Source: Utricularia gibba (lineage: Eukaryota; Plantae; Magnoliophyta). From it: DNA of 64,000 nt. The stretch covers positions 1,674,001-1,738,000 of the forward strand of contig NEEC01000008.1 of NCBI GenBank assembly GCA_002189035.1, in the 5' to 3' direction. The first letter of the stretch is position 1; each line of letters starts with the position of its first letter. The translations under genes and the position numbers were made by a program. Positions 1-31,960 of this stretch are shown one piece after another. Under the pieces are notes generated by a model. The model was given only the letters and a program-made list of their open reading frames with translations, was not told the origin of the DNA and did not search any database.

Positions 1-2610
1 GGTCGCGATTAGGGGTATTGTGAAAAATGGGGTGACGTTAGCTACGGCGGGGATATTCACCAGGGCTTTTTATGCTGATTCTACCGACATCAAATTAAAC
101 GATCCTTGGTGGTTTTTTTACGCCGGTGTGTCATGTTTCCTGGTAATTTTTGCCGGAATTATGTCCGGATTGACGTTGGGATTGATGTCAATCGGAGTAG
201 TCGAACTTGAAATTCTCCAACGGAGTGGCAGTCCGATTGAACAGAAGCGAGCTGGTAATTCAATTTCCGCCACCTTTTATTTTGGTACTGGATTGAATAT
301 ACGATGTGTGATGAGAATTTTACACTGGCTTGAATTTTGTGGGATTCCCAGCGGCTATTTTCCCGGTTGTTCAAAAGCAGCACCAGCTTCTTGTGACTCT
401 GCTTTTATGTAATGCTGCCGCAATGGAGGTTTGCTGTTTTTGTGTCATCTCAATGGAGAATACTTGAGATTAGGTTGTGAAACTTTCATCAAACTGAGCT
501 CATCTGAGAAAATTCATTCTCAATGTTGCAGGCTCTTCCAATATATCTTGACAAGCTATTCCATCCTGTGGTGGCAGTCATTCTCTCCGTTACATTTGTT
601 CTCGCTTTTGGTGAGGTACAGTATGCAGCCTCCCTTACATAGTGGTATGACCTTATATGAATTGAGCTTAAGCCTGCTTCTTCGATTGAGGTTAACCAGG
701 TAATTCCTCAAGCAGTATGCTCTAGATATGGGCTGGCGGTTGGTGCAAATTGCGTCTGGCTTGTACAGATTTTGATGATTGTTTGCTATCCTATTTCTTA
801 CCCAATTGGAAAGGTAAGTTTTTGTGTTCGAAACTATGAGCTGCCGATATTTTGCTTCACTTTGTGATATCTTTCTCGTGGCCTCTTCATGTTTCTTTGT
901 GATCCTTTATAACAGAGTTTATCTAGATTTCTCCATGCTGCAGTTCACCCCCTTGACGTTTTCATTTCTTTGAAACTAGTTCTGTTTTCTTTTTTCAGAT
1001 TCTAGATTTTGCATTGGGTCACGATGTCACTTTGTTTAGAAGACCTCAGTTGAAAGCACTTGTATCAATTCATAGCCAAGAGGTGTTCCTTTTATCTTTT
1101 ATTTGATGCGTGAACATCACGACTGATCCTGGAATGAAACAAACATATTGTAGCTATCATCCTCTCGATTTCCTTCTGAAACTCTTCCTTTCTGCTGCTG
1201 GCTCAGGCAGGTAAGGGCGGTGAACTTACTCATGATGAGGCAACTATTATAAGCGGCGCACTAGACTTGACAGAAAAGGCATGCTGAAGAATAGAAAGAT
1301 TCCCATCTTGTTCTGTTTACATGAAATGCATGATTTCTGTAAATTTACTGCAAAATAAACAGTATCTTTGCATGTGCAGACAGCTGAGGAGGCCATGACA
1401 CCCATTGAATCTACCTTCTCTCTTGATGTTGAATCAAAGCTAGATTGGTGAGGCTTAGGCTAGCTATTTTTGATTCATTCTTGCTGAGCTTTCTTGAAAG
1501 TGGTGAACTTGATGGAAGACGAGCATGTATTGTTTCACAGGGAGGCTATTGGAAAGATCCTTGCGAGGGGCCATAGTCGAATTCCTGTCTATTCAGGAAG
1601 TCCAAAGAATATTTTTGGCCTTCTACTGGTCAGTCCATATTTTCTCATGGTTCATCACAAGTTTCTTTTTTCATGAAGGAAACAGTTCCGTTTTTATGCA
1701 TGGCTCTGGCTTAGGTAAAAAGTCTTCTTACTATAAGAGCCGAGACGGAGACCCCAGTTAGCTCCGTTTCACTCAGGAAAATGCCTAGGCATGCACATCT
1801 CTGCACAATTTTTTCAGTTCTCTTGACTGCATACAGTATTGATACATAGCTAGTAAAAGAAGCTAATGTCATTTTGTCACAGAGTTCCGGCGGATATTCC
1901 GTTGTACGATATTCTCAATGAGTTTCAGAAGGGAAGCAGCCACATGGCGGCGGTGGTAAAGGTGAGATCAAGGGAGAAAAAGCTTTCCCGTTTGGGTGAT
2001 GATTCTGAGTTTGTGGGAGGAAGACATTCTGTCAGCAAGGACTCACAGCTGATCGTGCCTCTCCTGGAATCCAACCATGAGAAAAAACCAACCAGCCTTG
2101 CCATCGACATCGAAAAACCCTACCAAAACGGGAATGCAACAATCCATCCTGTGGAGGACATTGAAGATGGAGAAGTGATTGGGATCATCACACTAGAAGA
2201 CGTGTTTGAAGAGCTTCTCCAAGTAAACAAATCATCCTTCCTCTTGCTTTTACTTCAAGCTTTCAGCTTTCCTCATGGAAGCCATTTGCGCAGGAGGAAA
2301 TCGTCGACGAGACCGACGAATACATCGATGTACATAAAAGGTACGGTACACCCTTTTCTCCTGGTAGGGCAACCATTCTCCAGAGCACACGCATCCATCT
2401 TCCTGTGCATGAGCTCTGAGTAGTCTCTTGACTGAAATTGGCAACCGCAGGATACGAGTAGCGGCGGCGGCGGCGGCATCCTCCGTTGCTCGAGCGCCTT
2501 CAACTCGGCGATTAGCTTCTCACAAGGCCGGTACGTAGTTCCGGTTTCAAGTGGCCCGCCGTGTCTCTTCCCGGGAACGTCTTGTGTCAGATAAACGCTA
2601 TAATGATTAG
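1..2610 (+). CDS. DUF21 (CNNM transmembrane) + CBS-domain protein, about 12-13 exons; start codon lies upstream of the window
   Basis: Spliced translation gives [54 protein letters not shown]|[41 protein letters not shown] and [16 protein letters not shown]. The last exon is uncertain (stop at 2538 if unspliced, 2610 if spliced). Confidence 0.95.
1279..1379 (+). other. GC-AG intron, donor AAG|GCATGC
   Basis: The conserved junction LTEK|TAEE requires this donor; no in-frame GT alternative is present. Confidence 0.9.
1789..1882 (+). other. GC-AG intron, donor TAG|GCATGC
   Basis: The junction KMP-R|VPAD (AG|A) requires this donor; acceptor is cacag at 1878-1882. Confidence 0.9.
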
Positions 2611-2690
2611 AGGAATGACCAGCATAATATATGCTATAAATATTATTAAAAAAATTAAATGGTCCACGAGAATTTCGGAATCAGGCCTGA

Positions 2691-2741
2691 GGCCCAAATA
2701 GAAAGGACCGGACTGAAGGCCCAAAACATTAAATCGGCCCA
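2691..2741 (+). promoter_or_regulatory. Cluster of three site II elements (GGCCCA) with no recognisable downstream protein gene
   Basis: GGCCCA at 2691, 2718 and 2736, followed by a pyrimidine-rich, TSS-like stretch. Confidence 0.55.
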
Positions 2742-4309
2742 AAATGAGCTCCTATCTCTTCCCCTCGTTTGTGTTGAATCTGTTTATTGTGCGTGGGTCA
2801 CTTGTCGCTCATGGCAGCAGAGAAGAGGCAGAGTGCATGTCCACACAATGACAATTGAAAGGTGAGCCTTGCATTCTTAATCTGAGTTCGACTCAATTCG
2901 AATATAAATTGCTCATTCGTTATAACAATCCTTTTTCATGCTTCTCCCACTCAGAAAAATTGAAACCATCTTTCTCGTACATTTTACAACAACATAAAGC
3001 AAATACACTGAAGATGCCCAACATGCCATTTTCAAATGTCGTGCAAGTCAAGCCATCTGAAGCCAAATACAAATCTGGACAGAATACGTGATGAGGGTTC
3101 ATCCAGACAACTCTATTGACTTACCTATTAGCATTGTGTATGCTGATAGGTGTGCATAACAAGTAGGATCTGTTCTAAGATCCCTGATCTACGTAACAAT
3201 ATGGCTGATATGGAGGCGACGGAACACTAAAGTTTTCTGCCACAGAGAAGATCCGGCTTCACTAATTTTCAGCAACATTCAATTCCTTACCTTTTCCTGG
3301 ATTAATAAGAGAAGCAAACCTGACTCCACTAGACTGATATGGCAAGAGTGGATTACGTGTCCTGTGGGTGCAATATGCAACTCCACAATCAGTTCGCACC
3401 GCCTGGGACCGTAGATACAGGGGCTTTAGAGCCCTGGTGTATAGCAAATAGTAGAGACTACTTTATGCAATAGTGTAATGTGATGTATGATTTCTAGTAA
3501 TAAGATAACCGATCAAAAAAAATCTATCTTGTGCCTGGTTTATATAGCAGTAGAATGAACGATAAGGAAGACAAGCACGGGAAGGAGTGCCCCTTGTTAT
3601 GGATGGTGCTCATCTTCTTCTGGCAAGGGACACACAGAGAAGCGCACATTCCTATGATAAAAAGCTAACCCAGAAACACCAAATGGTGATGCGTCCCCAC
3701 GTGCGTACAGTACACCACACCACTCCATCCGGACGGGCGAGATTTGGATGGACATCTGGAGCGCACGTGAAGCTGCATTGCATTGTATGTTTTATACCCA
3801 CTCCAGATTCTGCAACCAAATGGAATTCCATTGCCAAACAGTTATCAACAGAACGCTCAGATTTTTTTTTTTTTTTTTGGTTTGCAGCAGATGAATTCTT
3901 TACAGCAGCAAGTATGCTGTTTATGGTACACCAAGCCAGCAAGTAAAAATCATATGACTGAAGAAGGAGAAAGAATTCATAGCACGTGACATTACAGTAA
4001 CCTAAATCTGTCCAGAGAGGGTAAGACAGACGGACCCCTTTACACAAGGCATATTTGAGAGAGAGTACCGCACCTAGAAGCAGGTGTCATTGATATTGCA
4101 TCATGGATGCTAGCCACCATGAGCCCAACAATGCATGCTGTGCTGACATTGTTGATTGTCCCACATCATTTGTCTTCGCAGTTAAAAAACATCTGCAACT
4201 GCAGCCAACCCAACAAAATCTGAACCTAAATTTAAATCCCAACAAAAAAAAAAAGAAGACCTCAGTTAAAGAGGGTGGCTGTTTACCTGAGGAGCTGTCA
4301 CGCAGAAAA

Positions 4310-7300
4310 TCATCTAGGTCTCCAGTAATCAGAAGCTGGAATGCACAAAAACTCGATCAGTTATAGGAGAGAGAAGAATTTGAAAGCTCACCACAGGAAA
4401 ACCACTGCAGGGGAGAACCTCTATTTTCAACAGGAATGGGGCCTTCACAATGGCTGTAGTGATTTACATGCCTATGGTTCACAGGGCCTGGAGGACAATT
4501 CCATCTATTGTTAGGAAACGAAGTCTCACGGGGTGGTCCATTATATTGTGGTGGAGCATGATTCATCCTGCTATTATCTTGATAGCAGGGGCCTGGAGAG
4601 GGGACAACAGAGAAGAATATTCAGCTCAATATCAAGCAACCAAGAGCCTACAATGAATAAGTTAGAGAGATCTAGTTACCAGAATTGTATGGGTATGGAG
4701 GCCGCCAGTGATCTCCTGGATGATCACGATAGTTAAATTTATTTCTGTCCCGGTGTCTGTAGAAATTATTATTTTCAGGATTGCGAGAACGGTATCTATT
4801 GTAATGTGGAGGAGGGTTATCTCTACGCGGTTGTTCCCTCTCATGAATGTACGAAAATTGACTTGAGGTGGCAGGTTGCGGAGGCCTCCAATGGAAACCT
4901 TTGCCATACGGGTCACTTCTCTGGAAGTCACTAGAAGCTCGGCCAGAAAGATGGGAGTTTGGCCGATTGACAGGACAGGCACTATTGGAATCAGGCAGCT
5001 TTCTAGGCGCCTGGTCTTCAAAATATCCATTGCCCTGACGGCGATGATGGACAGGATCCATTGTTGATTTTCCTCTTGGTGGATCAGATTGGCTGCATAC
5101 TGATTCCCTGAATTCCCTATTGCTATTCTGCACACGAACAAACAACACAAAAAAAATTGATAAAATATATGAACTTCCACCAACAATCTGGATATCACAC
5201 GCACAACAAAAAAAAATCTTTATATAAGAAGGCGGACAAAAAAAGAACCTGAGAATTCGAAAAACGCTTTGAGTCAAGATCATCAAGCTGGGGTGGAGGC
5301 TGCTGAGCGCATCGAGAAAATGGAGCAGATGCGAGCTGGGCATCCTCTTGCTGACGTATAAATGATGGCTCGTTGTTATTTGATGGGCAATGTGAAATAT
5401 GAGTGCTATCTGTTCCAGAAGTGCTAGGAAACGTAGCGTCAGCTTCACAAAACGGAGCTACATCCTCCATTTCAAGCTCACCCTCGACATCCTTCAAGAT
5501 GCAGGCACGTTTCTCTACTCTGGGAATTGGAGTCTTTTCAGCATCCTGACTATCAACATTATGCCATATAGATTCACAGTTCTCTCCATCAGATTCATTT
5601 CTTCCATCACTGTCACATCGCACAGGAGGCATACAAAAACCTGGAAGCTGAATGCTTGAATTACTGAAAAGAAACAAGGAACAATTCAGGCCTCAGGGGA
5701 ACCTGTGTAAGTGCGAAAAACACATCAACTCATTAACTTGCCTTCCATATTCGTCTACCAGCATACCCTCCATTTGTCTAACAGGATCATCAAAAGCTCT
5801 TTCATTTCTTTGAGGACGACGGGAGCCAACCACAGGGTATGGACAACAGAAGGCCTCAAGCTCTCTGATGTGATGACGGATTATGGGTTCTGGAAGTATT
5901 TTTCTATCCAGCCACACCTTCAGAACCTACTCATTATGCCAATTAATTAGATATCGCCATTGAACTGAACATCGAGAATGTTGATCAGGTGGATTGAAGC
6001 ATGAACATATAGAGAGAGATTACTCACTTTTAAACACTGGCGATGATTTTCACTAGAGCTACTGCTAGGAGGGGCGGCAGCAGATAACAGACGCGGCAAC
6101 ATGGCCTGCACCGAGGATATATAGACACCTCCATCACCTGAAAACAATGTAATAAATTCACCCTAAAATTTCCCCATTCAATGAAATGCAGTAAACAATA
6201 ACCGCAGCCACACAGCAAGCTCATTCACAATGGCAATGCCTTCATAGAGATAAAATAGCACTTCACCTTTCATCATCCGAGAGCATTGAGTGATGGAATC
6301 AATAAGGAAGAACAGATTTACTTTTTTGTGCGAACTTGACTCCCGTTCCAAAACACAAACCAGTATTTCCACCACCTAAAGCATAAAGAAAATTCAACAT
6401 TACAACCTGGTTAGAAGAATCTATGCAGTCATACCCTGACATATAAGATTTACTGGTCAGAAAATTCCAGGCAAACGCCAATTATTTGCAAACATGAATA
6501 CCTTGGACGCAAAACCAAATTTTGCAGCATCAATAGCCATTCGTGTAGCACGACCAATACTATCTTTTGTCCTGGTCAATGACCCTACCATGGTTTCAAA
6601 AGCTAATAAAGATTCTTCTCTGCTGCTTGACGTGTTTGAAGAATTGAATTTTTCAGGATGCATGTGTGAATAAGGACTTTGTGTGATGATATTATCCAGA
6701 GTGGGGTCATTTATCACACACTGTTTGCCCTTGGAAGAACATGGCGGAGATTCCCTTGCAGTCGGATGTAGACCATCAGTTGGCAACGAAGAAGGTTCAA
6801 AAGTGGTTCTCTGATCACCGAATTCGCAGGCAACTGAAGCAAATTGAGATTGATCAAGACCATCTGACAAGTCAGTGTGGGTTAAAATAGCATTTGAATC
6901 CAACGATGGTAGACACACTTTATCTTCAGAGTCAAACCTACAAAGATGGAAAATAGAGAAGGAACGCATACATTAGTTATGCTCACAAGCTGGAGGGAGG
7001 TGATGAATGATGATGCACGAAGACTGGAAAAATACTACCTCTTTTCATCCTGTTTATTCTCCATTGGAAATTCGCTGGTGTTACACTGATTATCAGCTCT
7101 ACCGTCTGCATCATTGAAAGCGATGGGGTTGATGATCTCAGGTGGAGCTACAGAAATTTCCTCTATAGTGTTTGAATGTGAAATCATCTGTGAAATAGCA
7201 TGATCCGGATTTTCTTCCATGCCAGCTTCTGCATTTCCTTCTACATCGCTGAAATGTGAATTCATCTGCAAAATTCCAGGATCTAATTTTTCTTCTACGA

Positions 7301-10300
7301 CATCCAAGTTGAGGCTACCAATCTTGCACTGATCAGTTAGGGAGATTTTTGGACTAGCAGACAATTCATCACCAGCTGCAGCTGAACCACAATTTTCATG
7401 AAGCTCAACCTCCAAGTCACGACCAGCCACAGTTGAACCAAAATTTTCATGAAGCTCGACTTCCATTTCTGTAACTAAATCATCAGCCAACGACATCTCA
7501 AGAGGACAACCTTCAGTTTTCACATATTCACATACTTCTCCTTCGTGATTTGCATTGTCCAGAGGAGTTTCAGAACAATCTGGCAGCACCATAACAATTT
7601 TTGTGTCATTCTCCACTTGACCCACACATTGCCCAGATTCATGATTATTCACATCCCTTTCTGCTCCAGACAATATTTCAACTGATTCCTTCTTTTCTGG
7701 AAGCAGCTCATAGCAGTCCTTCACAGAAGCACAGTAACTATTGGAGTAAACACTAATAGCAGGAGAATCATGGAGAGACCCTTCGCAGTCATCAGCTGCA
7801 TTAGCAGACATTGCCTCCAGTGCACGATGTATACGTTTTGATGGAGGCAATGTAGCTTCTCCATCCATGGAATTTCTCTTAATGTCCCAATGATGAATTT
7901 TTTCCTCAAGACTTACACTTGAAAAAGATGAATTTGGTCTGCCTTCCTTAACACTAGGAGCCTTAACTGCATAAGATTTCACACAGGTACCATGGCAATG
8001 CACAGACGGACCTTCAGGATCTTTAGACACTTCTGCCTTGTTAGGCACCCAGCCATCTTCTAACGATGATGGAGATGATCTGCCCATTCGTACTCTGGCT
8101 CTCTTTACCAATGGCAAGTGCTCATCACCGTCTTCCTTGACTGTTATTTGGGTTTTCTCAGGAAAACCAGGTGAAACATTGAAAGAGTTTACCACTTCAG
8201 CATCAGAACAGACAACAGCTTTAGATAAGGTAGTATTGTCACTCCCCTGCCTTTTTCGGCAGTGCATTCTTTTCTTCTTAATTATTGCTGTATCAGCTTG
8301 AAAGTTAAGCCTATTGATTAACTCGGTTTCAAGTAAACTGTTCTCAGTCGAAATCTTGGCTCCCATGGGTTTACTATTAATGTCAGAAGTTTTGCCATCA
8401 TTAATACTAACAGTATCAGATTCTAATGACATAATTTCAGAGCCACTTTCTTCATTACCATCCTCTGACATACTCCCACGCAGATCCGGAGCCTGTCCTT
8501 CAGAATCATCAGACAATTTCATGATCCTCCTGCTTCTTCTCAAATTCCGATCCTGAGGCACATTAGCCCCAGAGCTTCTAGTACGCCTACTATACCCACT
8601 CCCAAGGCCTTCAGTATCTGCATGGGAAGTACTTCTGGACCTAAGAATAGATTTCTTAGACTTGGAGGAACCATTTACCTGATAATATCTCGTTTTATTC
8701 CCTCGGGAATCAGACACAGGCATAGGTTCTGTGGACTCTAAAGCAGATGATGCCTCAGGAACCTTTTTCTCCCCATCATGCAGAGGTAGGTCACCAACTG
8801 CAGCCATAGCTGTCTCACTTAGACAGTGAATATCAATGCTGATCTCAGTTTCATGTACTTCAGCCGTTACCAAGTCAGCTTCCACTTCACGTTTCACTGG
8901 TGTAGTTGTTGACTGTTTAGAGTTGCTTTCATTAGGTACAATGTTCTCTTCAGAACCATTAGGTTTACCATCTGTATTTTGTTTACTCAACTTTTCAAAG
9001 CACTCAATTATCTCATTTACTGCTCTACCAAATTCAGCACCTTTACCATGGCGTCTTCCCAAAAGGGACACCTTTTTCTCTTCCGTAAATTCTTCTATGT
9101 CCGCAGGGTTGCAGAATGCACTGAAAAAGCACCATAAGTTTAGTTACGCTCATGAACATAATCCCCCCCCCCCCAAAAAAAAAAAATTAAAAAGCTGTAA
9201 GGAAATGCTGGAGTGTGTATTACCAAGAAAAAAACATTTGAAACCACGCAATACCCCGGTTAACGAGCCATAAGGGGGAAAAGAGAATAGACAGTGAAAG
9301 TTCAACAAAGTCTACACACTTTAAACGTATAGTTACCCAACCAAACAATACAAAAATTGGAAAAAAAATAAGCATGCTACATAATTTGAAAAACCTTCAA
9401 TAGAACTTAAAACGATTTTGTAAAACGCACATAACTAAGTAACCCTTTAACATAAGTACAAAGCTGAGTTAAGGACAATTTTCGGAGAAGGGACATTTCC
9501 ACAAGAACTCACATCTGGTCACCACCAAAAAAACACACTACCACTTTCTTTGAATCAGCTGTATGGCCCCACTTCTCAGGGTCACCAACCTGCCATGGGA
9601 AAGCAGAAAAAAAATGTAATTTCCTGATTCCAGCTTGCATAAAGAGTATGGGAATAAAATAAAAGCAGCCTTATCATAAAAATTCCAAGCAGTAATATTA
9701 TCAGCCAAATACACAAATATATCAAAATAATCAATCAAAAAATAGAATACCTGCCTACAATATTATCTAACAAAGAAAATCCATAAAAAAACGAGAAGCT
9801 GTTTCAACCCAGAACAGTCTCATTTACATACCATAACAAGACATCGCACTATGACATAGGCAAAAGCAAGTAGCAAGAATACTGCTAATACCATTTATCC
9901 AACAAACATTATAAATTTTGTAACATCTATTCAAATATTCCTATGTTCCCGCATCAGTTGATCTAGGTTGAACCGAATCAAAGTAACTTCATGCACACCC
10001 ATTTTTAGGATGCGTCTCAACAAGATAACACGTGACAGCAGAAAGTAGCAGCTACTAGATTAATCAATAGCTAAAAGTCCAATTCTAAAAATACTGCATC
10101 TTCAGCTAGAGTGCAATATAGTAGTAAAAAATACCAAGTTTTCTCCTTGAACCATGAAATCACCCCATGTCTCTCTCTCTCTCTCTATCTATATGTCTTT
10201 TCCTACTAAGCTAACATTAATCAAAATCCAATTTCAAAATTGAACACTCTTTCAATAATTTAAGCAATGACGAGGTTCAAAGTTAGACTAGTATAACCTT

Positions 10301-10536
10301 AATCCAGATCCAATTGGAGCAGATACCAGCCGACAGCAGAAAAACACCATAAACAGTGAAAATGCGAGACACACAAAAAATACACTTTCCCAAAGAAACA
10401 AACAAGTAAATTAAAGGCGTACCCTCGCAGGCCACGCCGGAAATCCTTTCACTTTAGCGAGCACGAGTTCCCCCACCTTCCACTTCCGCCGTGAGGCAGC
10501 TAGTCTCTGGGCAGAACTCCTTCCTCTAGGGGCCAT
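4310..10536 (-). CDS. HULK: HUA2-like (HULK) PWWP + CID domain protein, 11 exons
   Basis: N-terminus MAPRGR...KWKVGELVLAKVKGFPAWPA (PWWP). It also has EATLPPSKRIHRALEAMSAN, the CID region GSLTRTKDSIGRATRMAI...VDEYGSNSS and C-terminal DYWRPR*. The long PPLP tract of HUA2 proper is absent. Confidence 0.93.
5664..5741 (-). other. GC-AG intron, donor AAG|GCAAGT (consensus GC type)
   Basis: The junction DEYG-S|NSS requires this donor. Confidence 0.9.
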
Positions 10537-10879
10537 AAAGAACTACCAGACATCCATACAGAAACTCCAAAATACACAGAGCAATTCAAGAAACCCCAAA
10601 CCCAACAACAATTCACATTAACGCAAAATCCCCCGGCTCTCTTCAGTGTATCAGCCACAATACACCCAAAACAAATTAAGAGAACACACCCCAAAATCAG
10701 TAGAGTTGAGATGCAGGAGGAGACAGCGTGGATACAGTGGCTTGTGGTAGGCTCAAAAGACGCAAGCATAGAAAATCAGAAAGAACAGAGGCGTTGTAAG
10801 TAATGAGTTTCTTTATCAGTTCGATTTTTAGCTGCGAGCGTAGCTAACATGCGCCGCAGCCTCCTTAAGCCCGTGACCG

Positions 10880-10937
10880 GAGAGCCCACTTCAGTAACTG
10901 GAATGAGGCCCATTTCTTCACCTCGGCCCAAGCCCAG
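10880..10937. promoter_or_regulatory. Site II cluster upstream of the HUA2-like gene
   Basis: AGCCCA, GGCCCA, GGCCCA and AGCCCA within about 60 bp. Confidence 0.6.
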
Positions 10938-11066
10938 ATATCCGTCCGTACAGTGAAAATTGCATTTGGAACTATAGCTTCTTCTTACACCTACATGTTG
11001 TCTAAGCTAGGAGTGTTTTACTCATCTAAAACATTATTAACTTGTTAATTAAACCATGATCTGATC

Positions 11067-14000
11067 TCAGAACCCAGCTACGATGATCATCTCAGCAGCA
11101 GTCCCCATGGCGCCGATGCCGCTTATTCCCAGAATAGCAATGGCCAGCTCTTCCTCATTCCATTGCTTGAGCCCCTTGCTCACCCTCTTCACAACTTCGG
11201 CATCCACCTCCTGCATCCACCCCGGCGCGCAGCTCACCATTAAGCTCAGGTAGCCGGTCACGTACGCCCTCCACGTCGCCTTGCTGCAGCCGAGCGATAT
11301 CTTGCCGTCGATGGCGCTGGCGAGAAACTCCAGGTGCTCGCCGAGGAACTTCCGCCGATGCTTGGAAGCAGGGGTTGCGGAATCTACGCCCCATGCAAAC
11401 ATGGCGGAGAACACTGTGAAGTATGCCAGGGCATAGCCACCCAGCATGGGTAGAACACCTCTTGGTTCCTTGGAGCTAGGGTTCAGCTCGTGAACGGATA
11501 TGAACCAAGATGGCAAGATTTCTTTGATGAGGGACTGTACTGAACTCATGCCTCCGGAAAGCCAGATCAGGGAAGCCCCTAGGGATGCAGCCAGCTTCAC
11601 CTGGCTCATTGCTGTGGCAAGGGAGACGTGGCCATACTTTGAGGCGTATTTGGTTTTCCCGAGTTTCTCCAACTTCTCAGGGGGGAGCGCACTGGAGGTG
11701 ATGTCCTTCACTGTCTCGATTAGGAGGGACACTATCTTTTCGGTAACATAGACAATGTCTCTGATGGCTCGATGGACTCTCAGATAAAGAATCCCGGGGG
11801 CAACTGCTGAAAGGCCACAGGCATGGTGAGAGCCGAAGCCGTGACCGAGAAGAGCACCAGCTCCACCACTGCTTGCTACTGACGAAGAGTTTAACCCAAG
11901 AACTGTTGAGAAGCAAACTCGAAGAAGTTGAACTACTGCATCATTACTGTGGTAGAACACAGTCTGAGATGCAGAGAAGACAAGATAATCGCTCCATCGC
12001 TTTGCCTTCTGGCTCCATAAAGCAGCTAATATAGGCATGCACGGCCAAGGGCAACTTATTCCAAGATTGCTCAAGGCATGACCAACCAAGTTCAGATAAC
12101 GCCGATCTACCCCCCGGTCAAGTTTAAAAGTGATAGTAAGACTAACAAAAGCTGCCAGCGGCAATGGAAGAGTCACAGGAGAATTCCCTCCTGAAAGAAA
12201 GAGAATCATTTTAAAGTAGTAAAAAAGTCACAGATGTCTCGCCATCTCGCTTATAGACATAAGATAATTATGAGGCAAAACAAGACAGGTCATCTCACGC
12301 TGGCTTTATCATCAATGTTTACCTCGTTTCATCAGGTATGCAATATGCCCCACTACTATGTTTTAGAAGACATGCTCTGACAAGAGAGTGAGGCTGCTAA
12401 AAATACACAAACCATACCTACGGGAAGACCTGGAACATTCACACCAGTGGCAGCTACAATCTTTTTAATCTGTTGTTCCACCATGAACAAATTTGCTGCA
12501 GGGCTTGGCCAGTCAGTTCCATTCATGGAGGCAGGTTTCCATAAACCACGTGTAACTTCTGCTGAGAAGTAGCTGACAATAGTTGCAAGCGAAGCAGGAA
12601 GGAAATCAGCAAGGTCCTTGAGTCCTGAGACATATTCATTAAGAAGAGTAAATAAATAACACCAGATAAACAAGTTTGAAAATTAAACAAGAAGGCCAAA
12701 AGCTATTTCCATGTATAAGGGTTGTTGAATATTAACAGATAAAAGACAAAAAAGGCATGATTTGATAACTATAATATACTGACAAACCAGTTGTCAATTC
12801 TCGTGGTGACACTTGCCCATGGGCACAGGCAGTGAGGGCAGCATCAAGGACAAAAGGAACTGCCTCAAGAATATTCCAAGCAGGTAATTTTAGACAAAGA
12901 GAGGAATCATCTGTTCCAGAAACAGAAGCAGATGCAGATGAACTATTTTTTCCAGAATTGGGAAGTGTTGTTGGCGTTTCTTTCTTCATTTTCCTGAACA
13001 TCATGCTGAGGAGGGATTCCACAATCTGATGCACAGGATCTCCAGGAACTAGGCCAGAAAGAGTGGAAACAATACATTCTTGATTCTTCATGTGCCAACG
13101 CTTCAGCTTTGGAAAAGAATCCATCACAATTGTTCCTCTAGAAGAAGGGTAAGGCTGTTTTGACAATTCCACTATGTTATTGTGATTTCCCATTGGGTTC
13201 TCATTTAAAGCTTGATGCAAGTTGTGTATCAATAACAAGTAGTCTGGGGATAAACGGAAAGCAGCTGGTGTGGCATCTCCCATCCCAGAGTCCACAGGAG
13301 GTCGATAAAATCTCCATAATTTCAACAGCAGAGTGAATGCATTTGAAAAGACTGCGTGTGAAGTTATCACCTCCCCTGTATTCAAGCTCCATGACATGTT
13401 CGGTGCACAAGAACCGAACACCTCACATATAGGCATCAGCGCAGCTGCAAGTTGAGGAACCTGCGTACAAACAATTTAAAACACCATCATTATGTTGCAA
13501 AATAACAATTTTCTTTTCCCAGTCATGGATTTCGAAATGGAAGGTGATTTTCAGGAATAGGGAAAGGTAGGACATACCAACCCATGCAGTGAAAAAATCT
13601 GAATACAGTCAACAGATGATATTCCGGCAAGAAGAACGTTCAGGAAAGGGGCATATCCTATTAAATGACTTTCACTTCCAGCAAAATTTTGAGGGATCTC
13701 TGGTGCAAGCAATCTTATGATTAGAAAAACTGTACGTTCCTGTGCAAATATCATATGAAAAAGAGATTAAAGCACAGCTAGAAGATGAAACATAAATATC
13801 CCATATCAAAAGATAAGTGTGTTCTTCAGCCCCCAATGGCTTAAATTTCTCTTAAATTTCTAATTAATCTAGCAATATATCACGGTCATATATTTTGCAT
13901 TTGAAAGCTCATCTGCAAGGGCTGATGACATGCAATGGGCGCTGGAATTTCATAGTTCCAATTATTTAATAATGTGGTTATCTAAAGAGAAAACTTACCT

Positions 14001-17000
14001 GTATATTCCAACCACGGGATAGAGAAGCGCCACACAATACTGTAGCAGCAGATATCTTCTCATCATCTGAGCCACTGATCGCGATCTCATAAATTCTCTC
14101 AATCTCAGCTAAGCTTGTACCCGACGACATAAAAAATTTAGTTATCTCAATTTTAAATTCAAGCATTTGCACAGGTCATTTAGAAAACTACCGAAGAAAT
14201 ATAGTGTAATTGATTAAACAAAAAAATTGAATGATTTATAATTATAAATATTTATATCTACCTGTTAGCTGGAGTTGACTCCAAGACACTGACCATCTGT
14301 GGATTTAATGGTGATCCAGATATTAATGAAGACCAACTGGGCACTTGCCCAGAAATAGTCCGTGGAATGTTGTTGCCCAGATCTTTTTTCACATATCCAG
14401 GCCACAAATATGCCGATGTGTCCAGCAGATTCCTAGCAATGCAAGCCTCAACAATAAGATGCCAAAGGGTTCCAGCTGGAGATAATGTGAAATTCGTAAG
14501 CCAATCACTATTAATGATAAGCACAAACAAGACGACACAGCAGAAAAATGAGAAGCAAATGGATGCAAAGCCCTTTAAGAAAGAAATCTATGAAACTATA
14601 AAAAGAGAAGCAGAAAAGAAAATCTTGACAAGGAACAGCATCATGCCAAAACAGGGTGCAAATACCCCAAAACATAACAAGCAATAAACGTGATGAAAGG
14701 CTTGGATACGAAAGAGAAAAATAAACAATATAATTAATCCACCAAAAAAAACTCACAGCAATTTAACGGTAAGTCATTTAAGCTTAGGTTATCAAAATGC
14801 CCGATGTTAGCATTTTTATTTGTGTGAAGCACTGCTTTTGCATATGCTTGATTAGCCAATGTGCATACTGGAGGAGGAGGAGTCAACAATCCTTCAAAAT
14901 CACCCAAGCACTTCAGGCTGGAAACCAAATTTTCTCGGCGCTTCCCCATAGACTCGATACTCTTTCTCTGCCCAGTCAAGCTTTGTGGAGCTTCAGCTCT
15001 AATAATCGTCTCCTCCTCCTCAATAAGATTTACAACAGCCAGCGTTGCAATGGATAATAACATGCATAAACAAGTATCCAGTCGAGGAACAGGCCCCTCA
15101 GATGAATTGCTCTCCTAGACAAATCAAAGGAAAAAACTTCCACTAGTGACCTTATTTTACAATGAAAATTTTTTTAGTGTAGATGTTTTTGATCTGTGAA
15201 CATGGAAGAAGATGGAAAAAACTTGCTAGTTACTTTACTTCTTAGAAAGAGCATCATTTTTCAGGGAATTATTATATAAAGGCATACGGCAAAAACAAAA
15301 AGTATTACATTGCTGGTTTACAGGAGAAGTAAAACAGAAACGCTGCTTACCCGCTGAACAAGGCGCAGCACTGCAGTCCACATACCAAGAAATGAATCCT
15401 GCCAAGAGGTTTGATTTAGAGCCTGGAGAGACTTCAGTAAACCTGCAAATCATCTATATATTACACAGATATACAAAATTAAATAGCCTGAAATGAGAAA
15501 ATACGGGTCATGCCTGCAAGGGTTACTGCAGAACTAGTAGCTCTGATTTGTGATCCATCCATGGCATCTTCTAAATACAGATCAATAGGAAGCCAAAGTG
15601 CTGAATGAAGTGTGCCACGCCAATGGGCAGAAGATGGCAAAGGAGGCATAGCTGTCGCAGCATGGAAATGCTTGAGTGAGTTTGTTTTGCAATCACGGGA
15701 CAGCACTTGCCGCGTATCAGATGTCAGATTTAAAATTTCTTCTGGAGAGATATTTTTTGAACTTCTCAAAGATGATGAGTTTGAGGCCAGAACCCTAACA
15801 TTCTGTCGGAATATATTCCAATGTGTAGGCCTAAAAGAAAAATATGAATAGAAATGAGCCAGTATTGGTCACTTATCATTATGCCACATTTTTAAATGAT
15901 ACAATATTCACTAACCCACACGGACTAATAAGAACTTTGTGGAAAAAAGCTTACATGTTCCTACGGGCCAAGTAAAGGATACGACAAGTTATTCTGTCCT
16001 GCAAAAATTCACCAAATACTTCAAGAGCCAGTACGGTGTTTGTCTTACTCATTGCTGCCTTATGTTCCAGCCTCTTCCCATCAATATTATCCACAAAGTC
16101 AATGTCCATGTCTTGACTGTGGATTGGCCATCGTGACTTCTTCTCAGAAGTTAATTCCATCAGTCCTTCATCATCAAGTGAAGAATCAAGCAGCTTCCAC
16201 ACGATTGAAAACACAAATTCAACAACAAGAAACCCTGGTTCAGAGGATTCAAACCCATATACTTGTGAAAACTGCAGTACATCACTAATAGATGTCATGG
16301 TCCTGCACATGCGAAATTATAGATCAGAGAATGGAAAATGTTGATATGTGAAATAAAAACGATGATTGCATGTCAATCATATGACCAAAAATTACAACAA
16401 AACATGGTTGATGAATAGTTAAGACATCTAAAACTTTGTATTCAGTTTACAAAAAAGAAAAACCAAAACACAGAAAAACTTTAAGCAAAAAATGCACCAA
16501 TCATACCTCTGGTAATTGGGGCCATTGATCAGGGATGGTAATGAAAAGGCATATCGTCTGACAAGCTCAATGTATAATCTATATGCCTCGGGATGTTTCC
16601 ATCGACATGGTATGACCCTGAACAATGACAAAACCATAAAGGATTTATCAGAAAAAACCCTTCTCAACAACAAAAAGATCTCATTTATCAAAACATTGTC
16701 CTTCAGGCCTACCATTGAGATTTGAACTACTGAAGTGAATAAAGATTCAATCAATCTAACATCTCCCTACGTAATCAGACATAAATAACAGCAGTACTAA
16801 CCCATATTTTTCATTTTTTCATCCCACCCACAGATATTCTCACGAATGTCAGGTTTCAAAAAAATTGCAATAACAGCATTTTCATTATTCGTTGAAGACC
16901 ATTGAATTCATCTTTATGGAGAATTTTAAAAAATATATTTTAGGCCTTTATATTGCACAATGAAAATCCTTGAATTAAAACATGCGCTGATTACGGACCT

Positions 17001-17276
17001 TGCGGAGAGAAGTGCGAGAACAAACATAGGAGAAACGAGGCGGATGGAGAGAGCCTTCTCTAGGTATTTCCATGCGAGTGGGATATTGTTGGACCAACAA
17101 ATATGAGAAACTAGAAGCCCCGCCACTTCGACGGAGGGAACGGTAGCCCCTGCAGAGTTGAGAATTGCGGAAAGCTCCATTGCCCACACAAGAGAATCGG
17201 TGCCTTTCTCCAGCGCCGCCTTCGTCATCTCTAATACGCCGTCCCACAGCCGCGGCTTCGGTTCTTCCGCCGCCAT
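11067..17276 (-). CDS. MED33: Mediator subunit 33 (REF4/RFR1-like), 12 exons
   Basis: Motifs LWDGVLEMTK, SHICWSNN, LWLPIDLYLEDAMDG, EGPVPRLDTCLC, LKDLADFLPASLATIVSYFSAEVTRGLWKP, WPSPAANL and SLGCSKATWRAYV. Splice junctions stay in frame. Confidence 0.96.
15443..15513 (-). other. GC-AG intron, donor CAG|GCATGA
   Basis: The junction VTLA-G|LLKSLQ requires this 71-nt intron; read-through hits TAA. Confidence 0.88.
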
Positions 17277-17604
17277 CCAGCCGCCGAGTCGTGTCGGCGC
17301 TCCCTTGCTTAGATTCTAGCGCATTCGAACTGTGCAAGGTGTTAAACGAAAAAGCTATTTCCCCATACCCTTGGACTCGTCTTTCATACTGTGCAGTTTA
17401 CAAGTTCAAAGTGCACAACCCCAACTACTTCGTTCCCAGACCAAAAAAAAATATATATATATATATATATATCATTTTATTACATGATATAAGAGTAACG
17501 GTGTTTTTGCAAGATGAAATTAGCTATACTTTTTCTTTTATTATCCTTCCCTCCGGGTCCCAAGTTGCACTGCCTAATTTACCAATCAAAAAATAAATAA
17601 ATAA

Positions 17605-17608
<4 letters not shown>

Positions 17609-17650
<42 letters not shown>
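17609..17650. repeat. (AT)n microsatellite, preceded by (TAAA)n; a shorter (AT)n lies at about 17451-17472
   Basis: Direct sequence. Confidence 0.95.
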
Positions 17651-17654
<4 letters not shown>

Positions 17655-17682
17655 TATTAAAGTAAATTCTAATCAAAATTAA

Positions 17683-17917
17683 AGGAATATTTTGAAAAAA
17701 TTTTAAAATCTATTTTTATTTTTTAGAAGTAAAAATAATTTTATTTTAGAATAATTTTAATTGTAAAAATAATTCTATCAAAAACACTTTTAAAATTATA
17801 ACTACAAAAATTATTTTTGAAAAAAATAAGAAATTGGTTAATTTTATTTTTTTATTTACTTTTTAAAAGTAATTTTAAAAACTAAAAATAGGTTCAAAAA
17901 TTTTTCAGAACACTGCT
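17683..17917. mobile_element. AT-rich Tourist-like MITE, copy A
   Basis: Imperfect ~37-bp terminal inverted repeats (AGGAATATTTTGAAAAAATTTT... / ...AAAATTTTTCAGAACACTGCT) flanked by TAA on both sides. Related copies lie at about 19540-19760 and 41664-41945. Confidence 0.6.
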
Positions 17918-18289
17918 TAAATCAAAGTTATTTGATGTAGATGAATGTAATTTTAGTTATAAGGTTTCATAAAAATGGAAATGCTACTATAAGTATTTAT
18001 ATAGTAGAGGATCCCCATAGCAAGTGTCCAAAAAGGTACCTTCTTGAGACGAAAACACGAACCGGGTGTGTACACAAAGAAGGAAGTGCTCGAGTAGGAA
18101 GACAGAACATAGCTGCTGCGGACAAGAATGAGGAGTCTTGTATCTGGAGTATCTACCAGATCAGATAATGCATGGCTGGAGATGAGCATTAGGCACTACA
18201 CAACAATGTCAAAGTGCTCGCTCGGTTGGGACACATCAACTAGATGACACCACAAACACTCCTCATTATTAGAATACATAATACCAAAT

Positions 18290-18700
18290 CAAAAAATGAA
18301 AGTGAAATAATTAAATATATAAGAAATTGTAAATCACAGTAATCAATTAAGCATAATATTTTTTAATATAATATATGTTTATTATGTATTTATGTTTCAT
18401 ATGTACTCATTCAATTCATCGAATTCTAAATTTCAACATGATATTACTATCTATAATATGAACACTACCTACAATCAAACAAAAAAAATAAGTGTTAACC
18501 AAATCGAATATCAATTTAACTTGAGACCAGATGTTCGAATAGACAATCTCATATTGGAAAATGAAAATAAAATATTCAAGTATATAAAAAATTACAAATC
18601 ATAAGTAATCAATTGAATTTAATATTTTCTAATATGATTCATATTTATTGTATACTTGAATTTCATATATGCTCATCCAATCCATCGGATTCTGAATTTA
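18290..18700. repeat. Diverged direct repeat of about 140 bp (18290-18435 and 18558-18700)
   Basis: Shared blocks AAAATGAAA, GTAATCAATT, AATATTTT.TAATAT, TTTCATAT.T.CTCAT.CAAT.CATCG.ATTCT.AATTT. Confidence 0.75.
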
Positions 18701-19539
18701 TATACTCACGACAACGAATGGTAAGTCATGCATAAACCTTAATTTGGGTTCGAACCGATTGCACATCTAGGTGAGTGTCAGAAGAGGGCTGGGTGTTGGC
18801 CTTAACGGGTTGTGAGGTTTTGAAACAAAGTAAAGCTAAATCCAAAAATATCAGAATTAACCAGGTAAAACTCAATGTGAGAAACCTCATGATAGTATCA
18901 ATTCACCATACTTTGTTTATACCATACTGAGGCAACAGTTTTACAAAACACACACATACAGCACATCAGTTGAAATCCAATCCTCCAATCACTGAGACTC
19001 CCTCTGCATCACACCAAAACCGACAGAGTTATGACAGCAAAAAAAGCAAAAAATCATGCACCTCCCACTTTCTCCAACGCCCACGTAGCATAATTGCTCC
19101 ACTTGCACAACATGGAGGGCACCATTCTCCACACTTCTAACCTATGCACTCACCATTCGTTCCTGTGAGGAGTCATCTCTAGATCTGGAAAAACAGCTCC
19201 AACACAAGATCCAAATAACCCTGCACGCGAATGCTTGAGAAGCCACAATTATAGAGCTCAACATCCTGCAGCAGAGCAAACTTGCAGACGCGTCAAGATG
19301 CTGGGCAGCAAAGAAATGCCACCCATGGCGTGGCGGCAACTGCAAAAATCCCATAAACCCATTTGGGCTCTCGTCATCTATCGGCCAACCCATTTGGGTT
19401 CATTCATATTCACCACGATAGAAAGAAACCAAACGTAGAAAAAAAAATGTCCCGTAAACCCGAAAACTCTCTCGGCGCCTCCATGTTTCCCCGGATCCAT
19501 TGCCACTCGGGAAACTAAGAACTCTAAAATATCTATCTT

Positions 19540-19760
19540 ACTTTTATTATTTTATTCTACTATATTTAATGAGTGTTATATAAAATTTTTTAAAATTATT
19601 TTTATTTTTAAACATTTTAATTATAAAATTAATTTTATCAAAAACATTTTAAAAATTATATTACAATTTTTTTAAAAAAAATAATAAGTTTTTTATTTTT
19701 TATTTCTATTTTTCTAAAATAATTTAAAAAAATAGAAAACATATTTCAAAATTTTTCCAA
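19540..19760. mobile_element. AT-rich MITE-like element, copy B (degraded)
   Basis: The internal stretch TTTTAATT.TAAAA.TAATT.TATCAAAAACA.TTT.AAAATTATA matches copy A. Confidence 0.5.
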
Positions 19761-20981
19761 AATATTATTTTATATTCTATCTCATATACTGACAAAAAAA
19801 ATACACTATAAATGATCAAATTTCTAAATGACCCATCTTCATCTCGTATTTCATATTTTAAAACAGTATATTTAAAACATGGTATAAATATTTGATTTAG
19901 CTCATCCTTCATACAAAATATACAAATTGTTATACAAGTGTTAAGAGACTCAAAAACTATACCTAAAACATGCAATTTAATTATTAATATAGTTAATGTT
20001 ATACTATCCCATTATTTGAAGGGAATAATCCACATCATCATATACATACATGTTATGGAAATAAATGATTTTAAAATTAAAATAAATCAGCTTTTTAAAA
20101 TATTTATTTAAATCCATATTATTTTCTTTTAATTCAATCACATCAATCCAACAATAATTATTTTATATACAAATGTAAATAAATGAAATCATTTTTTATG
20201 TTACACTCCCCAGCCAAATATCAACTTGTATGTGCTCAAATGATGCACATTAAAACATCATGTGCACCAGCTAAGATAAGATCATGAGATGAGTGGTCCC
20301 CACAAGATCATTAGGAATCCAAATCATCATTCCATATGCAATTTGCATATCAAATAATCTAAACCCAAAAACCTAAAAAAAGTGACATCCAATGATTTTG
20401 AAAACTAAGCCCATGTTTGATAAGATTTCTTGAAAAACATTTTTCAAATAGTATAGTTTCTAAAAAAAAAAATCACTTATAATTTTAACGTTTTTTGAAA
20501 TGAAATTCGTTTGTATTTGATAACTTATGAAATATTTCTATATAAATTGCACATGAATTAATTGCATTCCATAAGCTGGTTTAGGATTGGTTAATCTCCC
20601 CTTAAATGGGAATTACATTAAAATAAATATTTGCAGTATTGAATTACATTAAAATAATCAGAAATTTACTTCTTTTTTTAAAAAAACTATTAATATTTAG
20701 ATAATTATATTGGATGAAAAAGGGGAGTAAAGTGAATCGGAATCTTCTTTTGTTAATTAATTAACGGAAACAAATTTTGAAATTTGGCCGTTTGAGGCCG
20801 AAGCAATAAAACCCCCACGGCTTGCGTTCGCTTCAATAATTTCTCTCCAAGAACCCAACTTTTTTCTTGAATGCGCTGCTGCTGTTTCTTGTTTTCTTCT
20901 TCGTCTCTCTCTTTTCGGGCTCTCGTTTTTTGACGCGAAATAAACCCGAGATCGGAAATCCCATTAACCGCCACCGGCGTC

Positions 20982-23098
20982 ATGGGGACGAGTGGCGCTG
21001 TGTGTGCTGAAGCGGAGGATGATTCGCAGCAGCAGCAGCAGCTCTCTTTGTTGGAGTTCATTCTGTCTGCTTTGAGAAAATCCATGGCGTCTGGTTGCCG
21101 CTTCGACTGTATGGATCAAGGGGTTATCTGCGCGGTTCGTCAGATGGAAATCGGGTGGCCTACGAACGTTGAGCACGTAACCCATGTCACCTTCGACAGA
21201 TTTCATGGCTTTCTTGGACTTCCTGTGGAGTTTGAGGTCGAGATTCCATGCAAAGTTCCCAGTGCTAGGCATGCTTCTCTGCTCTCTCCCAAATTCTTTC
21301 ACTGTTTCCTGTTTTGAATGAGAATATCATAATTCCTGCATGTGTTTCTGGATTTTCCTGACGATGATGAAGGGGTGCAGTGAAATCATGGAATCCCACA
21401 AACATTGAAAGCATTGCAGAAATAATTAATGGCTTACTTCAGAGAGTAGATACTATTCATTTACTCAAGAAATCAGTAGCTAGAAGTAGGTCCATGGATT
21501 GCATTTATTTGCTCTGTACGCAGTTATCCATTAGATGCATATAGCTACTACTTGGGACCAAGGTTTATTGTAGACATGATTCTCATGCTCCATGGTCTCT
21601 CTCCTTCTCTCCTTTGCTGGTAAATTTATGTGTTTGTCTTCTTTCAAAGGAGTGCTTCTCTCTCCACTTTTTCTACGCCAAGTTTTTCCCGGTCAAGGGT
21701 GTCCTGCCTCCTTCCCTATCTCTTGGTAGATTCGTACAACAATTTTCCAACTTGTATAATTTTCCTACTTCAATTGCACTGGATGAATATTGAATTGACC
21801 AAAATCTTCACCCAAGTTTCTGGTTTACTTCCCTGCACGAAAGGTAGAAAGAATGAGACTTGGACCAGAAGCAGTCTGAAGCAGGTTTTGCATAAGAAAA
21901 TCAATACCTTGAATATAAACTGCACAGGACAAAATAATACAAAGTGCATCTCCCTGTAAAGAGTGAATTCCGTTATGGGATGAAGATAATGCATGAAAAG
22001 ATCAAATTTTTGCATCTGCTGATAGTCCAAGTTTGATTCCTGTTTCACCTTTGTCAGCTACTTCAGCTTAGAAGTTTAACATTTTCTATGTGGCTGTGGA
22101 TTGTTCCAGTATTAGCGTTTTTGGGGTGTCTCCAGAGTCGATGCAGTGCTCATATGACTCGAGGGGGAACAGCGTCCCAACCATTTTGTTGCTGATGCAG
22201 GAGAGGTTGTATTCACAGGGCGGATTGAAGGTGAGTTACCAGGATTTCTGTATGCAACAGAGTTCATGAGGGCTGTGCTTTGAGATGCTGATTTTCCCTC
22301 CCTGCTGCAGTCTGAGGGTATTTTTCGAATAAATCCGGAGAACAGCCAAGAGGAACATGTGAGGAACCAGCTCAACAGCGGCATTGTGCCTCAAGACATA
22401 GATGTTCACTGCTTAGCCAGCCTGATAAAAGCCTGGTTCCGCGAGCTGCCTTCTGGTGTTCTTGATGGAATATCTCCTGAACAGGTACTACACTGCAAAA
22501 CAGAGGAGGAATCCCTTGAGCTCATCAAGCAACTGAGACCAACAGAGAGTGCTCTTCTCAGCTGGGCTGTTGATCTCATGGTGGATGTGGCCGAGGAGGA
22601 AGAATCCAACAAAATGAATGCAAGAAACATTGCTATGGTCTTCGCCCCCAACATGACCAAGGTCTTTTTGATTGCATTAATCCTTGTGCATTGTCCATTA
22701 GCTCAATGTTTTCCATTTCTGTGCAGATGTCTGATCCTTTGACAGCTCTAATACATGCTGTCCAAGTGATGAACTTGCTGAAGACACTCATCACAGAATC
22801 TTTGAGGAAAAGGCAAGAAGCGATCTCCAGCTCACCTCTTCCATCTCAGTCTGATCCTGAAAGTGAACAAGAATCTGATAGCCAACAAGAGATGGAGATG
22901 GAGGGAAGCAGCTGCGAATCTGTGGATCATGACGAGCAAGACAAATGCAGCAGGAAAATGGAAGAAGTGGGATCATTGAATAAGGTAAAAAAGACCTTTC
23001 TGGGACAAATGGATGACAATGAGAATGCGATCAATGGGTTCAGGAAACAGTTAGAAGGCAATGCAGGTCCACCAATTGGTTCTTTGACTGTCAGATAG
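20982..23098 (+). CDS. ROPGAP: CRIB-domain Rho GTPase-activating protein (RopGAP), 4 exons
   Basis: CRIB MEIGWPTNVEHVTHVTFDRFHGFLGLP; RhoGAP SEGIFRINPENSQEEHVR, DVHCLASLIKAWFRELP and NKMNARNIAMVFAPNMT. Confidence 0.95.
21269..22109 (+). other. GC-AG intron, donor TAG|GCATGC
   Basis: The junction VPSA-S|ISVFGVS requires this donor. The upstream GT alternative gives a stop or a frameshift. Confidence 0.88.
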
Positions 23099-27751: not shown

Positions 27752-28402
27752 TTGGATGCCAATACTTCATTATTACAAGTCCAGTATAAACCATGTACTT
27801 AATACTATTATGATTGTTGTCGCTCTGGTTCTGTTTCTACATGATGGAGGTTCTTGAAACTTGAAAGCTGCAATCAGTAAACTACTTACTCTTTTACCGG
27901 CTGGGTTTATGGCGTAGGAGAAAGCACAAAACTTGACATTGTTTTGGCCATTTGAACACAGACAACCCATTAAGTCGCACATAAGTGTTTATAAAAGTTA
28001 ATCTTTATGTGTTCAACCCAAGAAAGAATGTGATTACATTAGTTGAATCTCAAATCGATTATAAATAAAATTGAAGTACGATTACGTACATGATAAAAAG
28101 ATGATTTATATAAAATAATCTTCTTTAATCTTGTATGATATCTTTTTTTTTTTTCTAAAATAAAAATATGTAAACTCATAAAATTAAATGTTCAAAATAA
28201 ACAATATCATATAATAGATTGTTACATATGCATTTTCTAGATGGTCATACCTCGTTGGATTTCATATAGGGCCTCTCGACGTGAGGCGGAGCGCAATAAA
28301 TGCGGGTGGTTGTGAACTCGGCCCATAAACAGATTATCCAAGTTTGGAGGTTATACTTTACCCTAGACTTGACAGCCGCAGGATTCGACCGGCGTCGCGG
28401 AA

Positions 28403-29896
<1,494 letters not shown>

Positions 29897-30278
29897 TTTC
29901 CGAATCTGAGATCAGTTGGTGCAGACTTTCATCTTTCTTTCAGTACATTTCACATTGTATCCCCACTTCACGGTTTTCTTGCAAGATACAATGACCTACC
30001 TGGAAAGACAATACACGTACGGTTGCATCACATTTGTAACTTGCTCGAATCCGATTCATGACACTTTATTTTTGTGGGGTCCATGCCCCAGTTGGGTTTA
30101 GAACACTGCGTACGCATTTCGGAAACTGACCAGAATCAGGTGTGTGTGGAGGATGGGGCTTTGAGCCAATAGTAATAAGCGGAAACTCGGGCCGAAATGA
30201 GGAAAGCCCAGTAAGGAGATGTAAGATAAAAACTTAACCTAAACCTAAAGGCCGCAAGCGTCGACAGGCGACGGAGCG

Positions 30279-31735
<1,457 letters not shown>

Positions 31736-31960
31736 TCTCCAAAGACTAGAACTTTGCCGGCTGGAGGTTCCATTGGTGCAGATTTTAAGCATTTTGTTGC
31801 TCCATTTTGCTAATCCTTTGTTTCTTTTGTGAAAGATAATTATCCTTAGATTTCCAATGCTGAACGTTGAGAGTTGCGATATCACAACTGCTGCATTTCA
31901 GCATATCTGAGGACAACTTCCCTGATTGGCAAAACGCCAGAGTGTAAAGGTAGAAAATGT

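Follow-up and report, generated by a model that had tools for sequence, protein, structure and literature searches.

Introns with GC-AG ends make up 0.8% of all introns in Arabidopsis (PMC1557818) and 1.2% in the plant average (PMC6310983), and the per-species table of the latter study gave, on computation, shares of 1.0–2.5% for angiosperms and 1.5–2.0% for Lamiales. Compensation of the GC donor is documented (PMC1557818; PMC2490688), and switching between GT and GC donors is frequent, with a net accumulation of GC in other lineages (Churbanov et al., 2008, PMC2490688). Parker et al. (2022, PMC9803359) distinguish two classes of 5' splice site, one of which has a high potential for interaction with loop 1 of U5. 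A literature search for Utricularia together with GC-AG introns or splice sites returned nothing relevant. Here we describe five GC-AG introns in a gene-dense stretch of 64,000 nucleotides (nt) from the bladderwort Utricularia gibba (the window; about 41% G+C). All positions are window coordinates, and a vertical bar in a motif marks the exon/intron border. The introns lie in genes for a DUF21/CNNM-CBS protein, a HUA2-like (HULK) protein, MED33 and a CRIB-RopGAP (Table 1).

A first-pass annotation of the window had claimed these five GC donors, and direct reading of the sequence found every motif at its place and on its strand, with AG at -2/-1 in all five and GCATG in four; C at +2 is given throughout as it stands in the assembly. 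Where the exons join in frame, each intron has GC as its first two bases and AG as its last two. The reading that we favour, with a probability of about 0.6, is that these are genuine U2-type GC-AG introns produced by ordinary GT to GC turnover, that their excess is local and that no special machinery is required.

Table 1. GC-AG introns of the window, with donor motifs and the source of each junction.
Feature	Coordinates	Strand	Type, length, donor and source
DUF21/CNNM-CBS intron (sixth seen in window)	1279..1379	+	GC-AG, 101 nt, donor AAG|GCATGC; RNA joints
DUF21/CNNM-CBS intron (ninth seen in window)	1789..1882	+	GC-AG, 94 nt, donor TAG|GCATGC; RNA joints
HUA2-like (HULK; CID domain) intron	5664..5741	-	GC-AG, 78 nt, donor AAG|GCAAGT; RNA joints
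MED33 intron, putative	15443..15513	-	GC-AG, 71 nt, donor CAG|GCATGA; read from sequence
CRIB-RopGAP first intron	21269..22109	+	GC-AG, 841 nt, donor TAG|GCATGC; read from sequence

Nine RNA runs, all of one organism, cover the first 6 kb of the window, and contigs from four runs belonging to three studies were compared with it over positions 1–6000. Contigs of runs X1, X2 and X5 carried joints at 1276>1378 and 1786>1881, each with an ambiguity of 2, which yield the two DUF21 introns with GC..AG ends. A minus-strand joint at 5663>5742, with ends CT..GC, was present in X1 and X2 and yields the HULK intron, at which X5 had loose ends at both borders. The remaining 12 joints in this region were all GT..AG, and the DUF21 exons joined by the RNA joints form a single uninterrupted CNNM/CBS protein frame. 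As the joints at 1279, 1789 and 5741 are exact, these three GC donors are proven at the RNA level, in contigs from two or three independent studies; the RNA check proposed for all five donors was thus answered for these, and the donors at 15513 and 21269 rest on sequence.

The same contigs gave further information on this part of the window. X5 (2017) is of another genotype, with many single-nucleotide polymorphisms relative to the assembly and 3-nt insertions after 3746 (GAT) and after 5304 (GAG, inside the HULK coding sequence), although it shares the GC junctions in DUF21. One X5 contig spans part of the intron at 1789–1882, which suggests some retention. By the RNA joints, the HUA2-like stop codon lies at 4312–4310 (minus strand), with 3' untranslated region introns at 4199–4286 and 3810–4073 downstream; the second of these junctions is about 150 nt beyond the stop and might expose the mRNA to nonsense-mediated decay. 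In an X6 contig, 3009 is connected to 3522 through 40 letters of other sequence (window 2977–3604, minus strand), a sign of an unannotated transcript, spliced or rearranged, in the interval from DUF21 to HULK.

At MED33, splicing from the GC donor would give ...AVTLAG|LLKSLQALNQTSWQDSFLGMW (TLAG|LLKSLQALN), which is collinear with its orthologues. A competing donor, ACCC|GTATTT with its G at 15504, lies 9 nt downstream, keeps the frame and would lengthen the protein by three residues (MTR), so that the MED33 GC donor is only putative. A home-made gene finder chose the GT site when given a GC prior of 2–3% and the GC site when given a lenient prior, and an index look-up of 15505–15564 in three RNA runs found one of two words present, just two words having been sampled. 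Together, the donors at 15513 and 15504 may act as a pair of alternative 5' splice sites (15495–15513, minus strand). For RopGAP, joining 21268 to 22110 gives ...EIPCKVPSAS|ISVFGVSPESMQCSYDSRGNSVPTILLLMQ (PSAS|ISVFGVSPESMQCSYD; PSAS|ISVFGVSPESMQ), the conserved stretch that links the CRIB domain to the GAP domain, and the GC junction at 21269 is the only one that yields the conserved protein; GT donors in the right phase also occur at 21230 and 21311, but both are weak, and their use would remove or add 13–14 residues. The earlier claim that only a GC donor keeps the frame therefore fails for MED33, where the GT at 15504 fits, and needs rewording for RopGAP, where the GT alternatives are in phase but break conserved sequence. 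Judged by the proteins that they predict, the RopGAP GC donor is probably used in splicing and the MED33 one may be.

The competing MED33 donor also bears on the proposal, made for animals and Arabidopsis, that GC is kept at weak donors for tunable splicing through alternative 5' sites or intron retention. The X5 contig over part of 1789–1882 would fit this as well, and alternatively spliced genes have an excess of GC donors (PMC2490688). We nevertheless hold such a regulatory role to be improbable here, as each of the three donors tested has just one junction in the assembled contigs and the GC state occurs in no relative, giving no sign of conservation.

A reading of the five as U12-type GC-AG introns was rejected. 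Their donors are GCATGC, GCATGA or GCAAGT, the U12 donor ATCC at +3 to +6 being absent from all five, and none of them contains a match to the U12 branch site TCCTTRAY within its final 45 nt; the five introns are therefore U2-type.

The ancestral state was read from contigs of other plants, in which exon-sized reading frames that run past the donor into the intron show the first bases of the intron. Every orthologue recovered has GT, at all five sites (about 110 for RopGAP, 10 for HULK, two or three for DUF21 and two for MED33). Among the roughly 110 homologous angiosperm exon frames of RopGAP, the codon after PSA-R begins with T (encoding Y, F, C, S or W, or a stop). C at +2 occurs in none of them, and two depart from this pattern: the annotated protein P0027, with I after R, and P0119, which has K in place of R. 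The window has H (CAT) after PSA-R. In ten orthologous HULK frames, what comes after EYGR is a stop, Y, F or C, which means T at +2, where the window reads RQ, with CAA and C at +2. For MED33, the donor at this codon position is CAG|GTATAT in one orthologous contig and CTG|GTACAA in the other. Orthologous donors at the first DUF21 site (1279) are AAG|GTATAC and AAG|GTGCGC, and three orthologous loci at the second (1789) have AAG|GTCTTT, AAG|GTATGCACAC and AAG|GTCGTG. Genlisea aurea, the best named match (82% protein identity, 76% DNA identity), has the RopGAP donor TAG|GTCAGT.

Since all recovered orthologues have GT, the five GC donors are derived, by lineage-specific T to C changes that in several cases affected GTATG donors. 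A reading of them as ancient, conserved GC-AG introns is ruled out: the same GC donors were looked for across angiosperm orthologues, as an outcome that would contradict the first-pass annotation, and did not occur. Its proposal of T-to-C drift at AG|GTATG donors is supported by the five derived changes at +2, most directly at DUF21 intron 9, where the nearest orthologue has AAG|GTATGCACAC and the window TAG|GCATGCACAT, a plain T to C change (GTATGCACA versus GCATGCACA). The relatives compared are distant, at about 70–76% exon DNA identity, so that these changes cannot be dated, and as GT and GC switch frequently elsewhere (PMC2490688) derived status alone is not unusual.

All five GC donors fit AG|G.A.G (A-2, G-1, A+3 and G+5), as does only one of the 12 transcript-confirmed GT donors in 1–6000 (Fisher p ~0.001). 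The GC donors are thus closer to the donor consensus at these other positions, with +4 and +6 off consensus in four of the five. This agreement with the classical compensation rule argues for normal rather than relaxed recognition, and the confinement of the GC donors to the strongest contexts lends no support to the earlier suggestion of relaxed 5' splice-site recognition. A U at +4 is reportedly favoured where U6 lacks N6-methyladenosine (m6A). The base at +4 in the 12 confirmed GT donors is A in six, C in four and T in two, and with A the commonest there is no visible global shift to +4U of the kind linked to loss of U6 m6A. At three of the four GCATG sites, T at +4 is also found in the GT donor of at least one orthologue; there it was probably inherited rather than newly gained as compensation. 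The 12 confirmed GT donors are themselves strikingly degenerate (among them GTTTGC, GTGTTC, GTTCTT, GTTCTC and GTGCGG), with G at +5 in three.

These donor contexts also bear on the idea that a variant U1 or U6 small nuclear RNA (snRNA), a change in U6 m6A (FIO1/METTL16) or in U1-C/LUC7 favours AG//G.AUG and renders C at +2 harmless. The combination of U at +4 and exon AG in four of the five GC donors, like the U5 loop 1 class described in PMC9803359, would suit such altered recognition, as would the degeneracy of the confirmed GT donors. We regard it as very unlikely all the same, given that A is still favoured at +4 in the GT donors, that GC donors occur in the strongest contexts only and that the +4 T is probably inherited at most GCATG sites. 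No snRNA gene was found by Rfam in the whole window.

Whether five GC-AG introns represent an excess depends on the number of introns in the window, which our crude gene finder puts, as a rough denominator, at 90–110. Within gene spans it recovered nine of nine tested DUF21 junctions; it erred, for example, at MED33 14.5–14.9 kb and at anthranilate synthase 62.2 kb, and was corrected by eye. It found no further credible GC donor among the approximately 55 introns at 22–64 kb. Additional GC donors obtained under a lenient GC penalty were discarded, those at 4471 and 2368 because RNA contigs ruled them out and the others because they had poor motifs or broke the coding sequence. The probability of at least five GC donors among 87–97 introns is 0.004–0.006 at a rate of 1.2% and 0.03–0.05 at 2%, and at 1.2–2% between 6 and 70 of the genome's 1,593 windows would be expected to hold at least five. 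As 1,593 windows of the genome were read, the local excess is not significant after selection: the excess claimed earlier stands as a local one (five of about 90–110, nominal p 0.004–0.05) and falls when set against all of these windows.

The same counts bear on a lineage-wide rise, in which the bladderwort GC-AG share would be several-fold that of other angiosperms (e.g. at least 4% versus 1–2%), with the window typical of the genome and with weak purifying selection or high mutation input fixing GT to GC changes in strong contexts. The local rate of 5 in 87–97 (95% confidence interval 1.7–12.9%), the derived state of all five donors and the 1.0–2.5% of angiosperm annotations (PMC6310983 supplement) are consistent with it, and the lack of credible GC donors among the introns at 22–64 kb speaks against it; we consider it possible, at odds well short of even. 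Slightly more doubtful is its stronger form, a several-fold GC-AG rise throughout U. gibba that is enriched for AG|GCAUG, with poor U1 pairing, and that came about by drift or by a change in U1/U5/U6-dependent recognition. If this were true, U. gibba would be a flowering plant in which tolerance at the 5' splice site has shifted naturally.

Some observations weigh against ordinary turnover. All five GC donors lie in the first 22 kb, which has a p of ~0.013 if they were evenly spread over the introns of the window; the octamer AGGCATGC is common to three of the five; and the preponderance of GCATG over GCAAG (four of five) has a post-hoc p of 0.016–0.03, for draws from donors with A+3 and G+5 and with 25–30% T at +4 assumed. 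With n = 5, the GCATG share, the common octamer and the clustering are leads and not findings. In addition, C at +2 rests on the assembly sequence, which, together with the MED33 and RopGAP junctions having been read from sequence, is also what an artefact would have in its favour, be it an assembly error at +2, wrong gene models or U12-type introns. An artefact is scarcely credible in view of the three exact junctions in RNA contigs and the absence of a U12 donor or branch-site motif; moreover, five independent identical substitutions are unlikely as errors.

We infer that ordinary turnover would have proceeded by a single T to C transition at +2 of each donor, the donor being GT in other flowering plants. 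Positions A-2, G-1, G+1, A+3 and G+5 may pair first with U1 snRNA and, at a later stage, with loop 1 of U5 and the ACAGA box of U6, and as these remaining donor positions are strong the C.A mismatch at +2 would be tolerated, allowing GC donors to persist. The bladderwort lineage has very high substitution rates and has undergone strong genome shrinkage. Such fast sequence evolution would speed GT to GC turnover, in which drift probably has a part. On these data, five GC introns in four adjacent genes are indistinguishable from the upper tail expected over the windows of the whole genome. The default reading is accordingly that the GC-AG introns are ordinary and the genome fast-evolving. Should the excess be purely local, the window adds five more ordinary GC-AG introns and a warning that gene models here must allow GC donors. 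If the genome-wide share is several-fold the usual one, it would offer a natural experiment on the tolerance of the plant spliceosome for C at +2, and could show whether exon AG and +4U/+5G contacts replace U1 pairing.

Other features of the window were noted in passing. Where the CPSF100-like gene encodes its C-terminal region, at about 47100–47140 (plus strand), the conserved ...TVLVGD and KMADFKKYLE... are in different frames a few bases apart, beside a G run, which may reflect a frameshift, an indel in the assembly or a very small, unusual intron. The ribosomal protein L19 gene is present in two tandem, near-identical copies at 28300–29800 and 30200–31750 (plus strand). The RUP-like (376 aa) and LysM proteins of the window had no exact match on record.

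Compared with known systems, the introns described here share the GCAT start of U12-type GC-AG introns with GCATCC donors, but have GC or GA in place of CC at +5/+6, lack TCCTTRAY near the 3' end and follow exons ending in AG. From the study of 5' splice-site classes (PMC9803359) and that of U6 m6A (FIO1/METTL16; 2023, PMC10581693) they differ in that those concern GU donors and a genome-wide preference, whereas the confirmed GT donors here show no shift at +4; exon AG with U at +4 does resemble the class that depends more on loop 1 of U5. With GC donor turnover as described by Churbanov et al. (PMC2490688) they share lineage-specific GT to GC change at conserved intron positions, in strong contexts and more commonly in fast-evolving lineages, although that study was genome-wide, polarised on a tree and made in mammals, and ours concerns five sites in one plant window with distant relatives. 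Relative to the textbook GCAAGT donor, the GCATG donors pair less well with U1. Against the U2-type GC-AG introns of plants (Sheth et al., 2006, PMC1557818; Pucker and Brockington, 2018, PMC6310983), four of the five here are set apart by T rather than A at +4, three by C at +6 (GCATGC), and all five by falling within 22 kb; in their GC..AG ends, their short AT-rich introns, their strong -2A, -1G, +3A and +5G and their removal from mature transcripts, they are alike.

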